From Hemiscyllium ocellatum (taxonomy: Eukaryota), in NCBI RefSeq assembly GCF_020745735.1, contig NC_083433.1, positions 17,061,363-17,125,362 on the forward strand: a DNA stretch of 64,000 bases. Reading direction: 5' to 3'. Shown one piece after another: positions 9,487-64,000 of the stretch. The translations under genes and the position numbers were made by a program. How positions within the stretch are numbered: the stretch's first letter is position 1; every line of letters begins with the position of its first letter. Under the pieces are notes generated by a model. It saw nothing but the letters and a program-made list of their open reading frames with translations. It had not been told where the DNA came from and ran no database searches.

Positions 9487-10066
9487 ATGGCGTTAGTGCA
9501 GGCTGTGGTATCTCCTGCCTGGCTGGCCAAGGCAATCAGCAGCGCTAAGGCCGGGCCGTTGCGGGTCTTGGACTCCTCTTGGTATTTGCCAGAAATGCAG
9601 AGGGACAGCAGGAAGGAGTTCAAGGAGAAGCATATTCCCGGCGCTACCTTCTTCGACTTGGACGAATGCAGAGACCGCTCCTCTCCTTACGAGCACATGA
9701 TGCCCGGGCAGGAGCTTTTCTCCCGATACTTGGCCAACCTGGGCATCTGCAACGACACCCACGTCGTCATCTACGATGCCAGCGATTTCGGGCTGTACAC
9801 TGCCCCCCGGGTCTGGTGGATGTTCCGGGCTTTCGGTCACAGCCGGGTGTCGGTGCTGGATGGCGGCTTTATCAATTGGTGCAGGGAGGGTCTCCCGGTC
9901 ACTTCGGAACTGCAGGACTACCCCGTGGCTGAGTACAAGGCAAAAGCCAAAGCCCAGGTCAAAAGTTACCAGGAGATCCTGGACAACATCCAGAGCAAAC
10001 AGTTCCAGCTGGTGGATGCCAGGCCAGAGGGCAGTTTCAAAGGAACCGAGCCTGAACCCTTAGAAG
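9487..10066 (+). CDS. MPST: 3-mercaptopyruvate sulfurtransferase-like, copy A, coding exon 1 (N-terminal rhodanese domain and linker)
   Basis: Motifs LDSSWYLP, HIPGATFFDLD, SPYEHM, VVIYD, APRVWWMFRAFGH, VLDGG and GTEPEP; CpG-rich; phase-1 donor AG|GTTCCT. Confidence 0.93.
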
Positions 10067-10619
10067 GTTCCTGAGAGAGTTTTATTTTACTTGTTTTAAC
10101 CCCCAAAAGAGCTTATTTCAGTATCGCACCCAGATCCTTTGTTTAAATTTCTTCCAACATTTCTAAGGCGGTTGCCAACTCTGCTTCCAGTAGTGGGCTA
10201 GTATGTATTGCCAATCAGGATTGGCTGTGTATGGGGAGATTGAGACAGTGAAGAGGTGGATATTTCCCTGAACTGATGCATTCTGTAATATGTTGCATTT
10301 ATTGTAATTTTAAACTGCTTTTCGGGTTTGCCAAGTTAGCTGTGACTTTCATTGCACTGTTACAGTAAGTTAGGGTAGTGATAGATTTATGCTGTGTATT
10401 TCACAGTCAAAGTTACCCAACTTGTTCACTTCACTTTTGAAAGGCAGACAGTAAATTTAGTCTGGTTACACTGAGGCCCTACTATGACACGGTTGACCAA
10501 GACCACATTTCATTGTCAAGTTTATTACAAAAGTGCCAGTGCTGAATTACAGAAAAACTGATTTAAACAGGCCAAATTACCTGATTTAAACAATCAGATT
10601 TCATATCAATTCAATACAC

Positions 10620-11628: not shown

Positions 11629-12762
11629 AATAGAGAATGTAAGCAGGAAAGGTATTTGAATTCTAATAAACCTCTAATGTTTAAACATCCATTGTTGATA
11701 AGGCTAACAAACAGTGTTGCAAATGTTTGACTGTATGTTCAGGTTAATAGATTATGTGGTATTAACTTGCTTGTTTGTCTTATGGGAATATCATTACTCA
11801 TCAACTCACTTCAAATTTTAAACAGTGATATTAAAAGACTCCACTGAAGTCTGATTTAAGAGATCTGAAGGTACAGATTCCGAATTGTCCTGTAACACAT
11901 TAATCTAGCAGTGGAGGCCCACATCACATATAATGACCATGTTCAGTAATACAGCAACAAATAATTTGTCTTACATTCCTTTTCTAAGCAACCAGGGTAC
12001 TGCCACTCTGGAAGCTCATTATTATGGCTGGGTTTTCAAACCAAGTATCTTAGAAATCTACAGTAGTCAGGATAATCTATTCCTGTTGTATGTATAATCC
12101 CCCACCCTCACCAGGCAGGTTACTCATAGATTAGCAAAAGCAAATGTTAGGGGAGATTCCAAGTGCATTGAAATCTGAAAATTAGGGCCTCCACTGCTGA
12201 TTCCAAAGAAATCCAGACTTGCACTTGTTTCGTATCTTTCACAAGCACAGGCAATCTTTTCAGCCAGAAAAGTTCTTTTGAAGAATGATCTGCATTGGAA
12301 AGTGGCAGATTCAGCAGCGCAGAGTCAATTTCCCCTAAACACAACGTAAGAACGACCAGATAATCTTTTTGACTCAAGATAATCTTGAGTGAAGGATAAA
12401 TGCTGACCAAGACAAGTGGATCAGCTCCTCCATCTTTCTTCCAGTAGTTTTAAGGGTGATCAGCCAAGCTCAAAGGAATAAAACCCTTTTTTATCCAAAG
12501 GGGCGAACACCTCATATTCCAACCCAAAAACATTAGGAGAGCAGATTGGATAAAGTAAGAGGTTTTGGTTTCAGAAACCTGTTAACTTCTTGCAGGACAT
12601 CTGAGGAGAAATTGGACACAGGTTCTGAGAACAATCGTGGTATATTTGCCAGTATGCTAGTGAGATTTGTGCAGCATTTGACCATTGCGACAGATGTGAT
12701 TTCCTTGAACTGGATTGGGTTTCCTTCGATTCACACTTTTTAAATTTGTCTTATTTCTCAAG

Positions 12763-13064
12763 ATATTGAACCTGGGCACATCCCCGACAGTATCAATATC
12801 CCCTTTGAGACCTTCATGGATCCAGAGACTCTCAGGATGAAGAGTGAAAAGGAGCTGCAGTGCTTGTTTGAGGATCACAATGTCGACCTGAAGAAACCAC
12901 TGGTAGGGACGTGTAGTATCGGGATCACTGCCTGCTTTGTTGTCCTTGGTGCCCAAATCTGTGGGAAAGAAAATGTGATGATCTACGATGGTTCCTGGCA
13001 AGATTGGTTCACCCGGGCCGACCCCAGTCACATTATCTCGGAGAGAAAGGAGAAAGTCAAATAA
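12763..13064 (+). CDS. MPST: 3-mercaptopyruvate sulfurtransferase-like, copy A, coding exon 2 (catalytic domain)
   Basis: Acceptor TTATTTCTCAAG| joins exon 1 in frame (G+AT=Asp): DIEPGHIPDSINIPF...KPLVGTCSIGITAC...YDGSWQDW. 580+302=882 nt, 293 aa. Confidence 0.93.
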
Positions 13065-24398: not shown

Positions 24399-25483
24399 TG
24401 GGACGAGTTTATTTTGGGAATCTCGATATGCATGAATGAGTTGGACCGAAGTGTCTGTGCTGTATAACTCTATCATTCCAAGTGTCCTGTGTATTTGTAG
24501 CTACTTCATACAAATATGTAGGAGCCATTCAGCCCTTCAGTCCTGTTCTACCAATCGATTAGATCATGGTGTACAGCTATTTTTTAAGTAATTTTGAGAA
24601 GATATTCTGATATTTTGACTCCTTCAATGAATTTGGGATTATGATATATTGAAAAGGTGAGATGGAATATCCAGGGTACTTGAGGACTCTAACAGTGTGG
24701 AGAAATGGAAGGGTAGATTGCTTAGACAGTGAAATCAGAGTATAATTGAGAAGGATCACTCTTTCTGACCATAAAGCTCTTTTATTCTGATATAACAGTC
24801 AGTAACTGTCAAATGGACTCATTCCAAAATAAACACATTAATGCCTTGGTTGTAGTGCAGACATCAAGTTTACACAAACACATTAACAGTGATGTTGTAT
24901 TCAGAGAATCAAACCACCTTGGCAATGGAAGACTGAAAAAGGTCTGGAAGATGAATTATATGGTCACATAGACTGACCATGCCAAGATCTATGGAACAGG
25001 CCATGAGCCTGTCTCTAGAAGCTGTAATTGAGTGGCACCTCTTCACATCCAGTGTGTGATGTGGCAAGATACTCACCAGCTCTCACTGCCTGCCACATTC
25101 CTTTGGGAAGCATTTACAGACTGCGAATTAACTTGTTCAGCCAGATTATGAACTCGTCTTCACATGGCCGTGAAATCCTTAAGTGGGACATGAACCCAGA
25201 ACTTCTGACCCAGAGATAAGAGCTCTATCCACTACAACACAAGCAAACCTGCTGTTATTTTGACGAATTTCCCTTTAAATTTCTCAAATGCTCCATTTGG
25301 CAATGAGTTCTATATTCGAACTGCTTTGCTGTTTAATTCCCTGTTGGATTTATCAGTGACTATCACATCAGTCACATTTAAACAGGAACACGTTCTCTAC
25401 ATCTTATGTTTGAAAATTAACTGATCAGTATTCATGGTAGTTACATATCTGTGAGTTAATGTGAGTCTTGTTTGCTTCCACAG

Positions 25484-26581
25484 AGGAGTATCAGAAGAAA
25501 AAGGCTGCAGATCACACAGAGGAAAATCTCCAGCACATGCTCGGTGCCAGGTTCCTGACTGAGAGCAAAGTGACTCAACAAGTGAGTGTTTCTAACACGT
25601 CAGTTTCTCACCATCTCCCACGTGTGTCGGAGTTTTGCAGATTGAAGGCCAGCTCAAAAACGTCTTGACTTTGTTGATAGCACTGGATTCTGAAGCTGCG
25701 TTAGACAAGGCTGGACAAAGGACTGGACCCATAAGAATGTGTCAGTCGTGGTTCAGTGGGTCACACGCTCACCTCAAAGTCTCAAGTCTAGAAACTTGCC
25801 ACAAAATGCAGACTGAGGGACTGCTGCACAGTCAGAGGTTCAGCCTTTTGGATATGACCTTAAACCAAGGTGCTGTCTGCCTTCTCAGGTGACTGTAAAA
25901 GGAAAAAAATCGCAGGGCTGTATTTTGAAGAAAGGTAAGGGAGTTCTACCAGTGTCGATGCTTATCCCTCAACCAATATCATTAAAACAGATGGTCAGCC
26001 CTTTCTAAACAAAAGGAGAAAGACTTTCATTTTTATCGTGCTTTTCATCACTACAGCCAGTGATGTAATTTCTGAAGTGTGCATCTCTGTTGTAATGATG
26101 GGAACATGACAGCCAATTGATACACAGCCAGCTCCGACAGACAGCAATGTAACAATAACCACATTGTGTGCCTTTGTGATGTTGAGTGAGGGATAAATAT
26201 TGGCCAGGACACTGGGGCGTACACGTTCTGCAGGACCTATGGGAAATTAGACAAATGTGGGAGTAATGATATCACATGATGACCTAAATGGCCTCCTTCT
26301 GCTGTATGATTCTGCGATTCTGTGAATGGTGTTGTAGAAATATAAAGCAGTTTCGTCCTTCAGTTTAGCACACAGGCTGCCAGTCAAAACTGATGCGGAA
26401 ATGAACTCTCAATGTAAAATCTTAATTTTTTAAAAAAAGTTAACTTTAGGTCTTGAATTTTTGTCGAGGAAGGAGAGCAAAGGATTGCCCAGAGAAAGGG
26501 GAAGTGAAGAAGGAAAAGAAGAGCATATTCACACATAGTGACTTTAGAAAGTTTGAGAGAGAGTATTTTGGGGCTTCCTAA
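25484..26581 (+). pseudogene. RPS19BP1: RPS19BP1/AROS partial duplicate: exon 3 (25484-25581) and exon 4 (26450-26581) only
   Basis: EYQKKKAADHTEENLQHMLGARFLTESKVTQQ | VLNFCRGRRAKDCPEKGEVKKEKKSIFTHSDFRKFEREYFGAS*. Splice sites are intact; exons 1 and 2 are deleted at ~19400 and ~22130. Confidence 0.85.
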
Positions 26582-35241: not shown

Positions 35242-35821
35242 ATGGCGTTAGTGCAGGCTGTGGTATCTCCTGCCTGGCTGGCCAAGGCAATCAGCAGCGC
35301 TAAGACCGGGCCGTTGCGGGTCTTGGACTCCTCTTGGTATTTGCGAAAAATGCAGAGGGACGGCAGGAAGGAGTTCAAGGAGAAGCACATCCCCGGCGCT
35401 ACCTTCTTCGACTTGGACGAATGCAGAGACCGCTCCTCCCCTTACGAGCACATGATGCCCGGGCAGGAGCTTTTCTCCCGATACTTGGCCAACCTGGGCA
35501 TCTGCAACGACACCCACGTCGTCATCTACGATGCCAGCGATTTCGGGCTGTACACTGCCCCCCGGGTCTGGTGGATGTTCCGGGCTTTCGGTCACAGCCG
35601 GGTGTCGGTGCTGGATGGCGGCTTTATCAATTGGTGCAGGGAGGGTCTCCCGGTCACTTCGGAACTGCAGGACTACCCCGTGGCTGAGTACAAGGCAAAA
35701 GCCAAACCCCAGGTCAAAAGTTACCAGGAGATCCTGGACAACATCCAGAGCAAACAGTTCCAGCTGGTGGATGCCAGGCCTGAGGGCAGATTCAAAGGCA
35801 CTGAGCCTGAACCCAGAGAAG
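35242..35821 (+). CDS. MPST: 3-mercaptopyruvate sulfurtransferase-like, copy B, coding exon 1
   Basis: Paralogue of 9487-10066; retains GRFKGTEPEPRE; phase-1 donor AG|GTTCCT. Confidence 0.93.
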
Positions 35822-35968: not shown

Positions 35969-37906
35969 GGAAAAAGTGAGGACTGCAGACGCTGGAGATC
36001 AGAGATGAAAATGTGTTGCTGGAAAAGCGCAGCAGGTCAGGCAGCATCCAAGGAGCAGGAGAATCACAACCTCGATACGGGGTTGTGGGACTATCCTGCG
36101 CCGCCCGTTTCTACCTGCCTGCCCCGGCCGACCCATTGTCTCAGCCTGCTCCTGCCCCACCGAACTCATCTCTGCATACCTCGACACGGTCCTGTCCCCC
36201 CTTAGTCCAAGAACTCCCCACCACCTACGCCCTCTACCTCCTACATGATTTTCGCTTCCCCGGTCCCCAACGCCTTATCTTCACCATGGACATCCAGTCC
36301 CTGTACACCTCCATCCCCCATCATGAAGGATTCAAAGCCCTCCGCTTCTTCCTTTCCCACCGTACCACCCAGTACCCTTCCACTGACACCCTCTTTCGAC
36401 TGACTGAACTGGTCCTCACCCCGAACAACGTCTCTTTCCAATCCTCCCACTTCCTCCAAACCAAAGAAGTAGCCATGGGCACCCGCAAGGGCCCCAGCTA
36501 TGCCTGCCTCTTCGTAGGATATGTGGAACAGTCCATCTTCCGCAGCTACACTGGCACCACCCCCCACCTTTTCCTCCGCTACATCGATAACTGTATCGGC
36601 GCTGCCTCGTGCTCCCACAGGAGGTTGAACAGTTCATCCACTTTACCAACACCTTCCACCCCGACCTCAAATTTACCTGGACCATCTCAGACTCCACCCT
36701 CCCCTTCCTAGACCTCTCCATTTCTATCTTGGACGACCGAATCAACACGGACATTTACTATAAACCGACCAACTCCCACAGCTACCTAGACTACAACCTC
36801 CTCCCACCCTGCCCCCTGTAAAAACGCCATCCCATATTCACAATTCCTTCGTGTCCGCCACATCTGCTCCCAGGAGGACCAGTTCCAATACCAAACAACC
36901 CAGATGGCCTCCTTCTTCAAAAACTGTAATTTTCCCCCAGACGTGATCGACGATGCTCTCCACCGCATCTCCTCCACTTCCTGCTCCTCCGGCCTTGAGC
37001 CCCACCCCTCCAATCGCCACCAGGACAGAACCCCACTGGTCCTCACCTACCACCCCACCAACCTCCATATACATCGTATCATCCGTCGTCATTTCTGCCA
37101 CCTCCAAACGGACCCCACTACCAGAGCTATATTTCCCTTCCCTTCCCTATCAGCATTCCAAAAAGACCACTCCCTCCATGACTCCCTTATCAGATCCACA
37201 CCCCCCCAATCTCCACTCCCCGGCACCTTCCCCTGCAACGGCAAGAAATGTAAAACCTGCGCCCACACCTCCCCCCTTACTTCCCTCCAAGGCCCCAAGG
37301 GATCCTTCCATATCCGCCACAACTTCACCGGCACCTCCATACACATCATTTACTGCATCCACTGCACCCTCTATATTGGGGAGACAGGCCGCCTACTTGC
37401 GGAGCGTTTCAGAGAACACCTCTGGGACACCCGGACCAACCAACCCAACCACCCCGTGGCTCAACACTTCAACTCCCCCTTCCACTCCACCAAGGACATG
37501 CAGGTCCTTGGACTCCTCCATCGCCAGACCATAGCAACACGACGGCTGGAGGAAGACCGCCTCATCTTCCGCCGAGTAACCCCACAAGGGATGAACTCAG
37601 ATTTCTCCAGTTTCCTCATTTCCCCTCTCCCCACTTTGTCTCAGTCCCAACCCTCAAACTCAGCACCACCTTCCTGACCTCTGCGTCCCCAACCCCACTC
37701 CGGCCTATCATCCTTACCTTAACCTCGTTCCACCTATCGCACTTCCAACGCCCCCTCCCCCAAGTCCCTCCTCCCTACCTTTCATCTTATCCTGCTTGGC
37801 ACACTCCCCTCATTCCTGAAGAAGGGCTCATGCCCGAAACGTCGATTCTCCTGCTCCTTGGATGCTGCCTGACCTGCTGCGCTTTTCCAGCAACACATTT
37901 TCAGCT
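35969..37906 (+). mobile_element. Penelope-like retroelement (5'-truncated, frameshifted RT plus GIY-YIG endonuclease) in the intron of copy B
   Basis: TMDIQSLYTSI, AMGTRKGPSYA, LRYIDN, TDIYYKPT, YCIHC..YIGETGR..ERFREH. A partial inverted pseudo-LTR sits at the 5' end; 16-bp TSD CTAGTAT(G/T)TATTGCCA; empty site at ~10198-10213. Confidence 0.92.
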
Positions 37907-40476: not shown

Positions 40477-40778
40477 ATATTGAACCTGGGCACATCCCCG
40501 ACAGTATCAATATCCCCTTTAATACCTTCATGGATCCAGAGACTCTCAGGATGAAGAGTGAAAAGGAGCTGCAGTGCCTGTTTGAGGATCACAATGTCGA
40601 CCTGAAGAAACCACTGGTAGGGACGTGTAGTATCGGGATCACTGCCTGCTTTGTTGCCCTTGGTACCCACATCTGTGGGAAAGAAAACGTGATGATCTAC
40701 GATGGTTCCTGGCAAGAGTGGTTCACCCGGGCCGACCCCAGTCACATTATCTTGGCGAAAAAGGAGAAAGTCAAATAG
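40477..40778 (+). CDS. MPST: 3-mercaptopyruvate sulfurtransferase-like, copy B, coding exon 2
   Basis: DIEPGHIPDSINIPFNTF...TCSIGITAC...YDGSWQEW; in-frame join gives 293 aa. Confidence 0.93.
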
Positions 40779-43712: not shown

Positions 43713-46394
43713 AAAGTCATAGAGATGTACAGCATGGAAACACTCCCTTCGATCCAACCCGTCTATGCCGACCAGATATCCCAAGCCAATCTAGTCCCAC
43801 CTGCCACTACCTGGCCCATATCCTCCAAACCTTTCCTATTCATATACCCATCCAAATGCCTCTTAAATGTTGCAATTGTACAGCCTCCACCACATCCTCT
43901 GGCAGCTCATTCCGTACACGTACCACCCTCTGTGTGAAAAAGTTGCCCCTTAGGTCTCTTTTATATCTTTCCCCTCTCACCCTAAACCTATGCCCTCTAG
44001 TTCTGGACTCCCTGACCCCAGGGAAAAGACTTTGTCTATTTATCATATCCATGCCCCTGATAATTTTGTAAACCTCTATAAGGTCAGCCATCAGCCTCCG
44101 ACGCTCCAGGGAAAACAGCCCCAGCCTGTTCAGCCTCTCCCTGTAGCTCAGATCCTCCAACGCTGGCAACACCCTTGTAAATCTTTTCTGAACCCTTTCA
44201 AGTTTCACAACATCTTACCGATAGGAAGGAGACCAGAATTGCTCGCAACCTTCCAACAGTGGCCTAACCAATGTCCTGTACAGCTGCAACATGACCTCCC
44301 AACTCCTGTACTCAATACTCTGACCAATAAAGGAAAGCATACCAAACGTCTTCTTCACTATCCCATCTACCTGCCACTCCACTTTCAAGGAGCTATGAAC
44401 CTGCACTCCAAGGTCTCTTTGTTCAGCAACACTCCCTAGGACCTTACCATTAAGTGTATAAGTCCTGCTAAGATTTGCTTTCCCAAAATGCAGCACCTTG
44501 CATTTATCTGAATTAAACTCCATCTGCCACTTCTCCACCCATTGGTCCAGATCCTGTTGTAATCTGAGGTAACCCTCTTCGCTGTCCACTACACCTCCAA
44601 TTTTGCTGTCATCTGCAAACTTACTAACTGCACCTCTTATGCTCGCATCCAAATCATTTATGTAAATGATAAAAAGTAGAGGGCCCTGCACCGATCTTTG
44701 TGGCACTCCACTGGTCACAGGCCTCCAGTCTGAAAAACAACCTTCCACCACCACCCTCTGTCTTCTACCTTTGAGCCAGTTCTGTATCCAAATGGCTAGT
44801 TAACATAGAACATTACAGTGCAGTACAGACCCTTCGGCCCTCAATGTTGCGCCGCCCTGTCATACTAATCTGAAGCCTATCCCACCTATACTATTCCATG
44901 TACATCCATATGCCTGTCCAATGACGACTTAAATGCACTTAAAGTTGGTGAATCTACTACCATTGCAGGCAAAGTATTCCATTCCCTTATTACTCTTAGT
45001 TAAGTAACTACCTCTGACATCTGTCTTATACCTATCTCCCCTCACTTTAAAGTTGTGTCCCGTCGTGTTTGGCGTTCCCATACTTGGAAAAAGGCTCTCC
45101 TGTCCACCCTATCTAACCCTCTGATTATCTTGTATGTCTCTATTAAGTCACCTCTCAACCTTCTTCTCTCTAACGAGAACAGCCTCAAGGCCCTCAGCCT
45201 TTCCTCGTAAGACATTCCTTCCATACCAGGCAACATCCTAGTAAATCTCCTCTGCACCCTTTCCAAAGCTTCCACATCCTTCTCATAATGCGGTGACCAG
45301 AACTGTACACAATACTCCAAGTGTGGCCAGAGCTTTGTACAGCTGCAGCATAACCTCCTGGTTCCGAACTCAATCCCTGTATTAATAAAGGCCAAAACAC
45401 TGTATGCCTTCTTAACAACCCTGTCAATCTGGGTGGCAACTTTCAGGGATCTTTGTACATGGACACCGAGATCTCTCTGCTCATCTGCACTCCCAAGAAT
45501 CTTGCTATTAGCCCAGTACTTTGCATTCCAATTACTCCGTCTCAAGTGTATCACCTCACACTTGTCCACATTAAACTCCATTTGCCACCTCTCAGCCCAG
45601 CTCTGCATCCTATCCATGTCTCTCTGCAACCTACTACATCCTTTGTCACTATCCACAACTCCACCGACCTTAGTGTCGTCTGCACATTTACTAACCCACC
45701 CTTCTAAGCCCTCATCCAGATCATTTATAAAAATGACGAACAGCAGTGGACTCAACACCGACCCTTGCGGTACGCCGCTAGTAACTGGACACCAGATGAA
45801 CATGTTCCATCAACTACAACCCTCTGTTTTCTTTCAGTAAGCCAATTACTGATCCATACTGCTATGTCTCCCACAATCCCATTCCTCCGCATTTTGTATA
45901 ATAGCCTACTGTGGGGAACCTTATCGAACGCCTTGCTGAAATCCATATACTCTCATCTACCTGTTTGGTCACTTTGTCAAAAAAGTCAATAAGATTCGTT
46001 AGGCACGACCTACCCTACACAAAACAGTGCTGACTGTCCCTGATCAAATTATTATTTTCTAGATAGTTATAAATCCTATCTCTTTTCCAACACTCACTGG
46101 TCTGTAATTACCAGGGTTGTCTCTACTACCCTTTCTTGAACAAGGGAACCGCATTTGCTATCCTCCAGTCCTCAGGCACTATTCCTGTAGACAATGATGA
46201 TTTGGAGATCAATGCCAAAGGCTCGGCAATCTCTTCCCTTGCTTCCCAGAGGATCCTAGGATAGATCCCATCCTGCCTAGGGGAATTGTCTATTTTCACA
46301 CACTCTATTCTCCCTGAATTCCATGAGATCTAACCTTGCTAATCAGTATCCCATGGGGAACCTTGTCGAACGCCTTACTGAAGTCCACATGGAT
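43713..46394 (-). mobile_element. CR1 LINE (43713-44801 and ~46306-46394) with a second CR1 nested inside (~44802-46305)
   Basis: Two RT sets: SGVPQRSVQGPLLF..YINDL..KFADDSK and SGVPQGSVLSPLLF..FINDL..ADDTK. 7-bp TSD CAAATTT; absent in unit 1. Confidence 0.92.
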
Positions 46395-57945: not shown

Positions 57946-58947
57946 TGAGTGTCCTGTGCACTTGTATCCATTGCATAGAAATAGGTGGGGGGGCCATTCA
58001 GCCCCTCAATCCTATTCTGCCAATCAATTAAATCATGGTATATATTTTTAAAAATAATTTTGGTGAGGTATTCTGATGTTTTCATTCTTTTAATGGTTTA
58101 GGGTTTTGGTAGATTGAAAAGGTGAGATGGAATGTCCAGGGTAGTTGAGGACCCTACCAATGTGGACAAATAGAAGGGTAGATTGCTTAGACAGTGAAAG
58201 CAAAGGATAATTGAGAAGGATCACTCTTTCTGACCCTAAAGTTTTTTTGTTCTGATATAACAGTCAGTAACTGTCAAATGGACTAATTCAAAATAAATTA
58301 ATGCCTCAGTTGTAATGCAAGCATCAAGTTTGCACAAGCATGCTACCAGTGATGTTGTATTCAGAGAATCAAACCACCTTAGCAATGGAAGACTGAAAAA
58401 GGTCTGGAAGATGAATTATATGGTCACATAGACTGATCATGCCAAGATCTATGGAACAGGTCATGAGCCTGTCTCTAGAAGCTGTAATTGAGTGGCACCT
58501 CTTCACATCCAGCGTGTGGTGTGACAAGATACTCACCTGCTCTCACTGCCTGCCACATTCCTTTGGGAAGCATTTACAGACTGCGAATTAACTTGTTCAG
58601 CCACATTGCGAACACATCTTCACAAGGCCATCAAATCCTTAACTGGGACTTGAACCCGGAACTTCTGACCCAGAGGTAATAGCGCTGTCCACTGCAACAC
58701 ACTGCTGTTATTTTGCAGACTTTCCATTTAAATTTCTCTACGCTATGAACCGCAAATGCTCCATTCGTCAATGAGTTCTATATTCGAACTGCTTTGCTGT
58801 TTAATTCCCTGTTGTATTAGTGACTATTACGTCAGTCACGTTTAAACAGGAATACGTTCTCTACATCTTATGTTTGAAAATTAACTGATCAGTATTCATG
58901 GTAGTTACATATCTGTGAGTTAATGTGAGTCTTGTTTGCTTCCACAG

Positions 58948-59045
58948 AGGAGTATCAGAAGAAAAAGGCTGCAGATCACACAGAGGAAAATCTCCAGTAC
59001 ATGCTCGGTGCCAGGTTCCTGACTGAGAGCAAAGTGACTCAACAA
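58948..59045 (+). CDS. RPS19BP1: AROS coding exon 3
   Basis: TTCCACAG| ... |GTGAGT, 98 nt, phase 1-0; EEYQKKKAADHTEENLQYM...VTQQ. Confidence 0.9.
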
Positions 59046-60398: not shown

Positions 60399-62039
60399 TC
60401 TTGACCTTTGGTGAAAAGAGTGGACCAGCAGGCTTTCATTTTTGGGGAGAGATCAGATCACTGCATGACAAATCCTGTAAGCAGTGCCTACCTCAAGTCT
60501 TAATCATGAAGATGGTTTTTGGGGACTGATCTGGCACACGTGTGAGAGCAACAGAGACCTAACAAGGACAGAAAATCCAGTTCCTCTCAAGTTTGAGACC
60601 TGGCTGTAAAATCTGCCAGGGTCTACTCATCACTTATTTAGTTGTTGAAACCTTGTGTTGTCTTTTTCTGTGTTTCACATCAACATATAAACATTTATGT
60701 TAAGTGAAGAGTAAATATTGCATCGTACTAGATTACTTGCACTTATTACTAGAATGCCACTGTCTCCCCAAACCTTCTCCCACTGTGACTCTAGAGATTT
60801 GAATATTGTTGCAATCCCTCAGCCGGAAATGTGAGGAGATGGTCTCTGTGAGTGCAGGATCTTGTCAGATAGGGAGCACGGTTGTTCCAACTCAGTTGGA
60901 GCTTCTTGCTGCCAAACAGCTCACACCCTCCGCTTGGAGTCTCAGATCACATTTGGGACGCCCTAGTCTAACAAGTACCACCACTTATGTCACCTTTAGC
61001 TTCCAGTAACATCACAGTTTTATTCATAGAACAGGAACATTCTGAGATGTTTTGACTCTTTCTCTTTCAGTCCACCACAAGCCATGCCAAAGAGCAGAGC
61101 CATCTTGTTGGTTTATCCAGTCAGGCAGACCAGGAATGCTAGATTTCCAGCCTAGTCTTTGCTGACCTTTGGGGTGGCTACCATTCACTGTGGTGCCCTG
61201 GTGCTAAAGTTCCAGCTCCTTTGCACTATCCAGAAAAACACATTGGGTAACACCGACATGTGGACATCAAGAATGGATGAAATTGGGCAGAGTTACTACC
61301 CCTCTGCATGATATTCACATTCATTGTTCAGGCTCATTCCTGAGGAATGGTAATATGAGTGAGATGGGATGAACATCTTGCCTGATACCTACCACATCCT
61401 CCCCCTCCCTATTAAATTTTCAGTGTCTTTAAAACAGCAAGTATGAAGTTCAGAAAGCAACTCCCCATTTTCTCACATATTATGAAGATTGTATCTTCTT
61501 CTCATCAATGCCTCATGTAAGATTAAACCTATGGTTAACTTCACCCCTGTTATCCTCTTTAATATAACATAGTATATGCCACTGCTGGCATTGGTTGTCC
61601 ATCCCTAACTGCCCTTGAATTGAGGGCAGTTAAGAGTCAACCACATTAAGGCCACCTTAATGTTCTGGGGTCATGGGTTCAATTCCCAACATGGCAGCTG
61701 GTGGAATTTAAATGCAATGGATGAACAAATCTAGAATATAAAGCTAACCTTAGTATCAGTGACCATAAAACTATAATCAGTTACCATGAAAAGACCATCT
61801 AATGCACTAATATTAGTTGGGGAAAGAGACCTGTCCTGGAAACAGCTTATCAAGCCACTCTGTTCAAGGACAATTGGGGATGAACAGTAAATGTTGGCCT
61901 GGCCAGTGAGTGTGACATCCCATGAAACAATAAATTAAAAGACTGCCCCTAGCACCTGCCATCACCAGTAAGGTACACTGTATTGTTGCACAACTCAATG
62001 AATTCTTGTGATAGAACGTTATCTCTGGCCTCACTGAGT

Positions 62040-63965: not shown

Positions 63966-64000
63966 ACAACCACCATCAGTTGACAACCACCTGATGAAGA

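Follow-up and report, generated by a model that had tools for sequence, protein, structure and literature searches.

A derived CSIGIT active-site loop in tandem 3-mercaptopyruvate sulfurtransferase paralogues of hemiscylliid sharks

3-Mercaptopyruvate sulfurtransferase (MPST) is one of three vertebrate enzymes that produce H2S and persulfides, and between bacteria and humans its catalytic loop hardly varies. A locus of the epaulette shark, Hemiscyllium ocellatum, encodes two MPST-family proteins in which this loop reads CSIGIT, raising the question of whether CSIGIT is simply the ordinary chondrichthyan loop, a sign of decay in redundant duplicates, or the signature of paralogues with a changed substrate preference. 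The loop around the catalytic Cys is CGSGVT in MPST and CRKGVT in thiosulfate sulfurtransferase (TST, rhodanese), and it sets both activity and specificity (PMC10135228). What the loop contributes electrostatically is critical for persulfide formation by MPST, and swapping the rhodanese loop into MOCS3 raised activity 36-165-fold (PMC10135228). The literature searched yielded no paper on shark MPST paralogues and no mutational data for the Ser two positions after the catalytic Cys (+2).

Two MPST-family genes in tandem units

Within the window, the whole 64-kb stretch of DNA that was analysed and which contains no N, the 18-mer TGTAGTATCGGGATCACT occurs exactly twice, on the forward strand, at 12912-12929 and 40626-40643. 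In both places it encodes C244-S245-I246-G247-I248-T249 in frame. No further site was found in the window with up to three mismatches permitted, the chance expectation being 0.01. The exact search thereby confirms the two positions given in the original prediction and sets them in frame in genes that match RefSeq models.

Each loop sits in exon 2 of an intact two-exon gene with a GT-AG, phase 1 intron and with conserved start, stop and splice sites. In copy A, exon 1 (9487-10066, forward strand) begins with the ATG at 9487 and ends in phase 1 at GAAG/GT, with the donor GT at 10067; it encodes the N-terminal rhodanese domain, the linker and the start of the C-terminal domain, and carries R183S and R192L. 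Exon 2 of this copy (12763-13064, forward strand), preceded by the acceptor AG at 12761-12762, encodes the catalytic rhodanese domain and includes the stop codon TAA. The exons of copy B, likewise on the forward strand, lie at 35242-35821, where R183 and R192 are retained, and at 40477-40778, which encodes the catalytic domain and includes the stop codon TAG. The spliced translation of copy A (293 aa) is exactly RefSeq XP_060705130.1 (P0121), and that of copy B (293 aa) is 100% identical to XP_060705651.1 (P0001). RefSeq names both proteins '3-mercaptopyruvate sulfurtransferase-like'. Their coding sequences are 97% identical, with 25 differing positions (17 non-synonymous, 8 synonymous).

The two genes belong to tandem units. 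Unit 1 (1-27190), which holds copy A, is colinear with unit 2 (27192-60800), which holds copy B and is longer through retroelement insertions; non-coding identity between the two is 91-96%. A 1.94-kb insertion in the copy B intron (35969-37906, forward strand) is missing from copy A and contains a reverse-transcriptase-like ORF with a weak RVT_1 match (E 1.5e-4, under Pfam's cutoff). A third repeat unit starts at 60811 and runs to the window end at 64000. Its first part, 60811-61254, matches 1-443 at 96.8%, beyond which identity falls to about 76%; its matches to the canonical MPST locus of Chiloscyllium punctatum are repeat-like only, and any gene of this unit would fall past the end of the window. 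The two occurrences of CSIGIT are thus the product of tandem segmental duplication, not of independent recurrence. A canonical MPST inside the window is ruled out, as tblastn matched only the four exons of copies A and B. In mammals, TST is arranged head-to-head with MPST. Such an arrangement was looked for here, but neither the window nor the flanking DNA of the C. punctatum, Rhincodon and Stegostoma loci (L001-L003) contained TST-like exons.

The family of the two proteins is clear from their domains and structural matches. PF00581 (Pfam) matches two stretches of each (E about 3e-25), corresponding to two rhodanese domains. Alignments to the human MPST structures run end to end (E 1e-111 to 1e-112; 3OLH, 5.6e-112; 4JGT, 4.6e-111), whereas bovine and human rhodanese structures score lower (E 1e-100). 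Identity to solved MPST structures is 56-58%, and the fold is not in doubt. Together with their nesting among shark MPST in the tree described below, these matches indicate that copies A and B descend from a vertebrate MPST gene, as had been predicted.

It is at the active site that the two proteins depart from MPST. C244 aligns to human C248, and the loop is ungapped, six residues long, and retains Gly+3 and Thr+5. The MPST loop motif CG[ST]GV[TS] is nevertheless absent from both window genes and from three Chiloscyllium genes, all of which have CSIGIT. The loop is not the cationic TST type either, having no basic residue; the one representative with CRKGVT (P0137) shows 46-54% identity, depending on the exon. 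In the Ser-His-Asp triad (human S250, H74, D63), D59 and H70 are kept in A and B alike and the Ser/Thr position is Ile246, so that the predicted replacement of the triad Ser is borne out in both copies. The catalytic role of this Ser is itself a proposal. The arginines of the MPST carboxylate site (human R188 and R197) are present in copy B as R183 and R192 and replaced in copy A by S183 and L192. Of the motifs on which the MPST-like assignment was first based, YEHM is found in both copies, but EPEPR holds for copy B only (EPEPRED), copy A having EPEPLED in addition to R183S.

Distribution, rarity and age of the loop

The original prediction left open whether a canonical copy exists elsewhere in the genome. 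It does: XP_060705388 (P0128), on the same 50-Mb scaffold but outside the window, combines a CGTGVT loop with the two arginines. H. ocellatum therefore has three genes, the canonical one, a B type (P0001; CSIGIT, Arg at both carboxylate-site positions) and an A type (P0121; CSIGIT, Ser and Leu at those positions), in agreement with the predicted expansion of the family. The same trio is found in C. punctatum, with a canonical gene (P0124, CGTGIT), a B type (P0126; CSIGIT, both Arg) and an A type (P0003; CSIGIT, Ser and Ile), and in C. plagiosum, with a canonical gene (P0127, CGTGIT), a B type (P0125; CSIGIT, both Arg) and an A type (P0002) whose model ends before the loop and does not cover it. 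There are thus five full-length, intact CSIGIT gene models in three species and two genera, the sixth, C. plagiosum A, being partial. The Chiloscyllium gene models also include isoforms without the catalytic Cys.

Beyond these two genera, the other two orectolobiform genomes sampled, those of the whale shark Rhincodon and the zebra shark Stegostoma, have one gene each, with CGTGIT. Nine other chondrichthyan sequences, from Heterodontus, Heptranchias, Carcharodon, Mustelus, Pristiophorus and rays including Hypanus and Narcine, have CG[ST]GV[TS]. Given the loops of these other sharks and rays and the canonical gene that co-exists with A and B, CSIGIT is not the ordinary loop of a single chondrichthyan MPST. 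A word-seeded search with residues 222-275 against 5.8e9 proteins or clusters found CSIGIT only in two hemiscylliid clusters, and a protein search with exon 2 alone for fragment or transcript models carrying it returned just 2 candidates, both unrelated. CSIGIT thus appears to be the derived signature of a paralogue lineage restricted, as sampled, to Hemiscylliidae (Hemiscyllium and Chiloscyllium). The suggestion of a new vertebrate sulfurtransferase subtype survives in part: the loop is non-canonical and highly unusual, but it is confined to this one family and is neither vertebrate- nor shark-wide.

How unusual the loop is can be gauged from its relatives. Of the 96 nearest homologues that are full-length, 85 have Gly at +1 and 85 have Ser or Thr at +2; Ile at +2 is found only in the five hemiscylliid proteins. 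In this set two teleost 'MPST-like' paralogues are aberrant as well, with CAFGVT in Cheilinus (with H70N) and CSSGVT in Brachyhypopomus (with R183Q). A wider survey of 149 family representatives (50% identity clusters) is dominated by CG[ST]G-type loops, with Gly+1 in 112 and Ser/Thr+2 in 115 of the roughly 130 that have the catalytic Cys. A minority combines a non-Gly +1 with an aliphatic +2, namely CAVGIT (XP_054764089) and CFVGIS (XP_054763425) in 'TST-like' proteins of the sea urchin Lytechinus, CQLGVT in Argonauta, CEVGVT in a Urechis unicinctus 'thiosulfate sulfurtransferase' (AEV92812) and CYIGHT in one further protein. Among the close homologues Ile+2 is thus unique to these sharks, but in the wider family an aliphatic +2 is not, as it is also found in invertebrate TST-like enzymes. 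The five proteins outside sharks with an aliphatic +2 all lack both MPST arginines and the His and Asp. Across representatives, the two arginines occur together in 93 of 115 proteins with Ser or Thr at +2 and in 2 of the 7 whose +2 residue is hydrophobic (Fisher p=0.006, with no correction for phylogeny).

The lineage with this loop is old. A maximum-likelihood analysis of 20 proteins, five of them with CSIGIT, unites all hemiscylliid sequences (100/98) as the sister group of Stegostoma plus Rhincodon within orectolobiform shark MPST, and the CSIGIT proteins are monophyletic inside this clade (97/98). Since the A copies of H. ocellatum, C. punctatum and C. plagiosum all carry K36E and R183S, the split between A and B is older than that between Hemiscyllium and Chiloscyllium. 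In non-coding DNA, the window units match the canonical unit of C. punctatum (L001) at 74-78%, and the window units and that canonical unit are each roughly as distant from Rhincodon (76-82%), which places the duplication that separated the canonical and CSIGIT genes near the base of Hemiscylliidae; on this measure Rhincodon and Stegostoma are 89% identical and the two window units 91-95%. In exon 1 the signal is blurred by concerted evolution. In C. plagiosum, SAPYDHM and KTKPQ are common to all three genes, and the B gene (4-kb span) joins a canonical-type exon 1 to a CSIGIT exon 2.

Selection and rival explanations

To assess constraint, pN/pS was calculated from the window copies, exon 2 of the C. 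punctatum canonical gene (L001), Rhincodon (L002) and Stegostoma (L003). Along a path that lies wholly after the duplication, from the C. punctatum canonical gene to copy B, exon 2 pN/pS is 0.32 (14.5 N, 11.5 S; binomial p=0.003), and to copy A it is 0.41 (p=0.049). The canonical-only comparison of Rhincodon and C. punctatum also gives 0.32. Over the full length, the window copies compared with Rhincodon give 0.39-0.41 (p about 1e-5), and Rhincodon and Stegostoma give 0.47. As measured by these substitution counts, the CSIGIT lineage has been under long-term purifying selection. Between A and B, pN/pS is 0.57 (p=0.14), or 1.14 for exon 2 alone, and is indistinguishable from neutral drift. Hemiscyllium and C. 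punctatum orthologues differ at 14 residues for A, 16 for B and 10 for the canonical protein (1.4-1.6 times faster in A and B), a divergence that amounts to moderate relaxation, not neutrality.

The origin of the loop itself can be traced to a small number of changes. On the CSIGIT stem, exon 2 acquired about 4-5 replacements (N202D, G245S, T246I, L259I and perhaps N209E) and 5 silent changes; with no excess of replacements, positive selection on the loop is unsupported. The loop codons went from GGC ACC to AGT ATC by three transitions within five bases. Three of the roughly ten stem changes fall in the two specificity codons, for which the chance is about 1e-3 as a rough estimate on a pre-specified 6-nt target; alternatively, a single multi-nucleotide mutation could have produced the clustered transitions.

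On these data, A and B might be ordinary MPST copies in which the loop change was near-neutral and which add dosage or tissue-specific, normal 3-mercaptopyruvate activity. Copy B, which keeps both arginines along with Asp59, His70, Cys244, Gly247 and Thr249, fits such a view, as do the lack of a replacement excess on the stem branch, a constraint on A and B similar to that on canonical orectolobiform MPST (0.39-0.41 vs 0.47) and the tolerance of large residues at +1 and +2 in TST (CRKGVT). We nonetheless regard it as unlikely. Gly+1 and Ser/Thr+2 are normally strongly constrained, both in the close homologues (85/96) and in the wider family (112 and 115 of ~130), and the +2 hydroxyl contacts active-site ligands (PMC12926118). 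Moreover, the A copies of two genera have lost both arginines that bind 3-mercaptopyruvate, which is hard to square with unchanged use of that substrate. Still less can be said for an artefact of assembly or annotation, in which one gene was falsely duplicated or the loop contains a sequencing error. The 18-mers are identical and the coding sequences 97% so, but the non-coding DNA of the two units has diverged by 5-9%, the units also differ by insertions, there are 25 coding differences, and two independently assembled Chiloscyllium genomes have the trio of A, B and canonical genes in their annotation. We give this explanation virtually no credence.

A third possibility is that A and B are duplicates under relaxed selection, being either silent and turning into pseudogenes, or expressed as pseudoenzymes that no longer act as sulfurtransferases. 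Their proteins evolve 1.4-1.6 times faster than the canonical one, the pN/pS between A and B shows no significant constraint (0.57, p=0.14; exon 2, 1.14), and key catalytic determinants have been lost stepwise, the loop in both and then the arginines in A. In addition, the protein collection yielded no transcript-derived CSIGIT proteins, and Cys-less isoforms are among the Chiloscyllium gene models. Decay is, however, difficult to reconcile with five full-length intact CSIGIT models in three species and two genera plus the partial C. plagiosum A, and with the window genes themselves, both of which keep their start, stop and splice sites. Along the path that follows the duplication, replacements are significantly too few. 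Neutral DNA has diverged by ~25% from the canonical unit, and in simulations a neutral 879-nt frame stayed open in 2-3% of runs at 0.115-0.145 substitutions per site, so an open frame would be expected in only 2-3% of cases for each gene. Cys244, Gly247 and Thr249 are also invariant. We consider decay unlikely. The explanation that we favour, and that as a whole we judge to be probable though far from secure, is that CSIGIT is the shared derived loop of maintained hemiscylliid MPST paralogues whose preference has moved off 3-mercaptopyruvate.

Proposed function and comparison with known systems

Under the favoured explanation, MPST was duplicated in tandem in the ancestor of Hemiscylliidae, with the canonical CGTG[VI]T gene kept alongside, and the CSIGIT lineage later split into genes A and B. 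Both specificity positions have been exchanged, Gly+1 to Ser and Thr+2 to Ile, removing the hydroxyl that has been assigned to the triad and to ligand binding. The two rhodanese domains, the catalytic Cys, the six-residue loop, Gly+3 and Thr+5, which are all that a rhodanese-type enzyme requires for making a cysteine persulfide, remain in place, and persulfide chemistry would be retained with them. As the loop preserves its length and its Cys, Gly+3 and Thr+5, the backbone cradle for the persulfide is probably intact. A and B would then be maintained enzymes or persulfide carriers with a donor or acceptor preference away from 3-mercaptopyruvate, and copy A, which has also lost both carboxylate-binding arginines, would have moved further.

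Structural work on MPST indicates what these exchanges could affect. Arg188 and Arg197 hydrogen-bond 3-mercaptopyruvate, and active-site inhibitors contact Ser250 and Arg188 and, via water, Tyr108, Glu195, Arg197 and Thr253 (PMC12926118). Ile246 removes the +2 hydroxyl and adds a hydrophobic surface, and Ser245 offers a hydroxyl one position earlier. Side chains at +1 and +2 do occur elsewhere, with Arg and Lys in TST and, in invertebrate enzymes, Ala, Glu, Gln or Phe at +1 and Val or Leu at +2. By analogy with TST, which tolerates Arg and Lys at these positions, many different residues may fit into the loop at a modest cost. The other markers of the CSIGIT lineage are S62R, F104Y, S105T, G194D, N202D and L259I; of these, F104Y returns the human Tyr108 state and S62R puts a charge in the Asp59-His70 loop. 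Taken together, A and B are most likely persulfide-forming sulfurtransferases or carriers with a weakened use of 3-mercaptopyruvate, the weakening being more extreme in A.

A broader proposal is that A and B form a new vertebrate class converging on the loops of invertebrate TST-like enzymes. Such a class might use another donor, such as thiosulfate or a persulfide of glutathione or of proteins, and might serve sulfide or persulfide handling tied to tolerance of hypoxia and anoxia; B and then A would represent successive steps of a specificity switch, loop first and arginines second. Hemiscyllium and Chiloscyllium are documented to have exceptional hypoxia and anoxia tolerance (PMC10565405). 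Among elasmobranchs, epaulette and bamboo sharks are the best known for such tolerance. The link to sulfide and persulfide metabolism is a correlation only, drawn from five sampled orectolobiform genomes, and may be coincidence; we hold the broader proposal to be speculative and improbable.

The genes themselves were already annotated as MPST-like. What the genome comparisons add is that the loop is an old, family-restricted and selectively maintained signature beside a canonical copy, and that it has converged on invertebrate TST-like loops. The locus amounts to a natural experiment, tens of millions of years old, adjoining its unaltered parent gene. As the canonical, B and A proteins (90-95% identical) differ mainly at known active-site determinants, they provide a ready series on +1 and +2, the proposed triad serine and the arginines.

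The nearest comparison is with the canonical hemiscylliid MPSTs (P0128, P0124 and P0127). P0128 lies on the scaffold of A and B and has 91-92% protein identity to them, and the canonical proteins have in common with the CSIGIT copies the hemiscylliid-specific residues M210T, R227C, I234V, D264N, L273Q and A277T. They differ in their CGTG[VI]T loop, in a long intron that gives a gene span of 14.6-17.8 kb vs 3.6-5.5 kb in the CSIGIT genes, and in their slower protein evolution. Other vertebrate MPSTs (human 3OLH and 4JGT, mouse 5WQJ and 5WQK) resemble A and B in having two rhodanese domains, a two-exon structure and a similar length (297 aa, compared with 293 aa in the sharks), and share the catalytic Cys, Gly+3, Thr+5, Asp59 and His70, as well as both arginines in the case of copy B. 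A and B differ from them by the change of Gly+1 to Ser and of Ser/Thr+2 to Ile, and hence in the missing triad and ligand-binding hydroxyl; copy A differs further by R183S and R192L. TST (bovine 1BOH and 1RHD, human 8Q5Z) is alike in its two-domain fold, in a Cys loop of six residues that closes with G-[VI]-T and in a non-Gly +1, but TST has the cationic CRKGVT, whereas nothing in the shark loop is basic, and A and B cluster with MPST rather than TST.

The invertebrate TST-like enzymes come closest to the shark loop. Their pattern C-x-[VIL]-G-[VI]-[TS] is found in both A and B, and their loss of the arginines in A alone. CAVGIT of Lytechinus differs from CSIGIT by conservative A/S and V/I changes only. 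Overall, these enzymes are 40% (Lytechinus) and 42% (Urechis) identical to the shark proteins and lack Asp59 and His70, which the sharks keep. The likeness is convergent rather than a matter of descent, and it serves as a lead only to how the shark enzymes may work. A further parallel is found in lamprey MPST (Lampetra/Lethenteron, P0189 cluster), in which the loop CISGVT has a non-Gly +1 and Ser and Leu occupy the arginine sites, just as in shark copy A. The lamprey enzyme has kept the +2 Ser and belongs to a separate lineage, and its change is independent. Set beside these systems, the shark paralogues resemble an MPST that has gone part of the way which other lineages took before it, with His and Asp still in place, the loop altered in both A and B and the arginines gone in A.

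Organisation of the tandem units

Unit 1 (1-27190) and unit 2 (27192-60800), which carry the MPST-like copies A and B, respectively, are of different length, and much of that difference is due to retroelement fragments that comparison of the tandem units places in unit 2 only. The copy B intron holds one of these, an insertion of 1.94 kb that contains a weak RVT_1 ORF (35969-37906); two further fragments, reverse-transcriptase ORFs on the minus strand, lie downstream of copy B (44215-45803; RVT_1, E 1e-11 to 1e-12). A third repeat unit begins at 60811 and runs to the window end at 64000, with 96.8% identity to 1-443 and about 76% thereafter. The canonical H. ocellatum gene (P0128) may be located just past this point. 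Compared with the C. punctatum canonical locus, the third unit gave repeat-like matches only.

Extra 3' exon and predicted isoforms

Each copy is followed, 12-18 kb downstream, by a conserved extra 3' exon on the plus strand (25478-25581 for copy A, 58942-59045 for copy B), which is used in Chiloscyllium RefSeq isoforms. In the C. plagiosum A-type model (P0002), exon 1 is joined directly to the extra exon, while in isoform P0123 the exon is joined from a donor within exon 2. That donor, CTG|GTAGGG, lies just 5' of the Cys loop (12903 in copy A, 40617 in copy B). By either route, the predicted proteins lack the catalytic cysteine.

Exon 1 and gene conversion

The canonical copies begin MALARTVV versus MALVQAVV in the CSIGIT paralogues (9487-9510 and 35242-35265), and the resulting loss of Arg5 could alter mitochondrial versus cytosolic targeting. 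Compared with P0127 (canonical C. plagiosum) and P0126 (C. punctatum B), C. plagiosum gene B (P0125) combines a canonical-type exon 1 (ART, S62, F104, S105) with a CSIGIT exon 2. As SAPYDHM and KTKPQ are also common to all three C. plagiosum paralogues, these sequences provide evidence of exon-1 gene conversion among them.

Active-site changes in other fishes

Relative to copy B (35776-35821), copy A carries R183S and R192L (10021-10066) at the sites of the two MPST substrate arginines; its C. punctatum orthologue has Ser at 183 and Ile at 192. Aberrant loops also occur among teleost "MPST-like" paralogues: P0071 (Cheilinus undulatus) combines CAFGVT with H70N, and P0058 (Brachyhypopomus gauderio) CSSGVT with R183Q. 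In fishes, duplicated MPST genes may thus have had their active sites remodelled more than once. Like copy A, lamprey MPST (P0189) has Ser and Leu at the 183 and 192 sites, in combination with a CISGVT loop.
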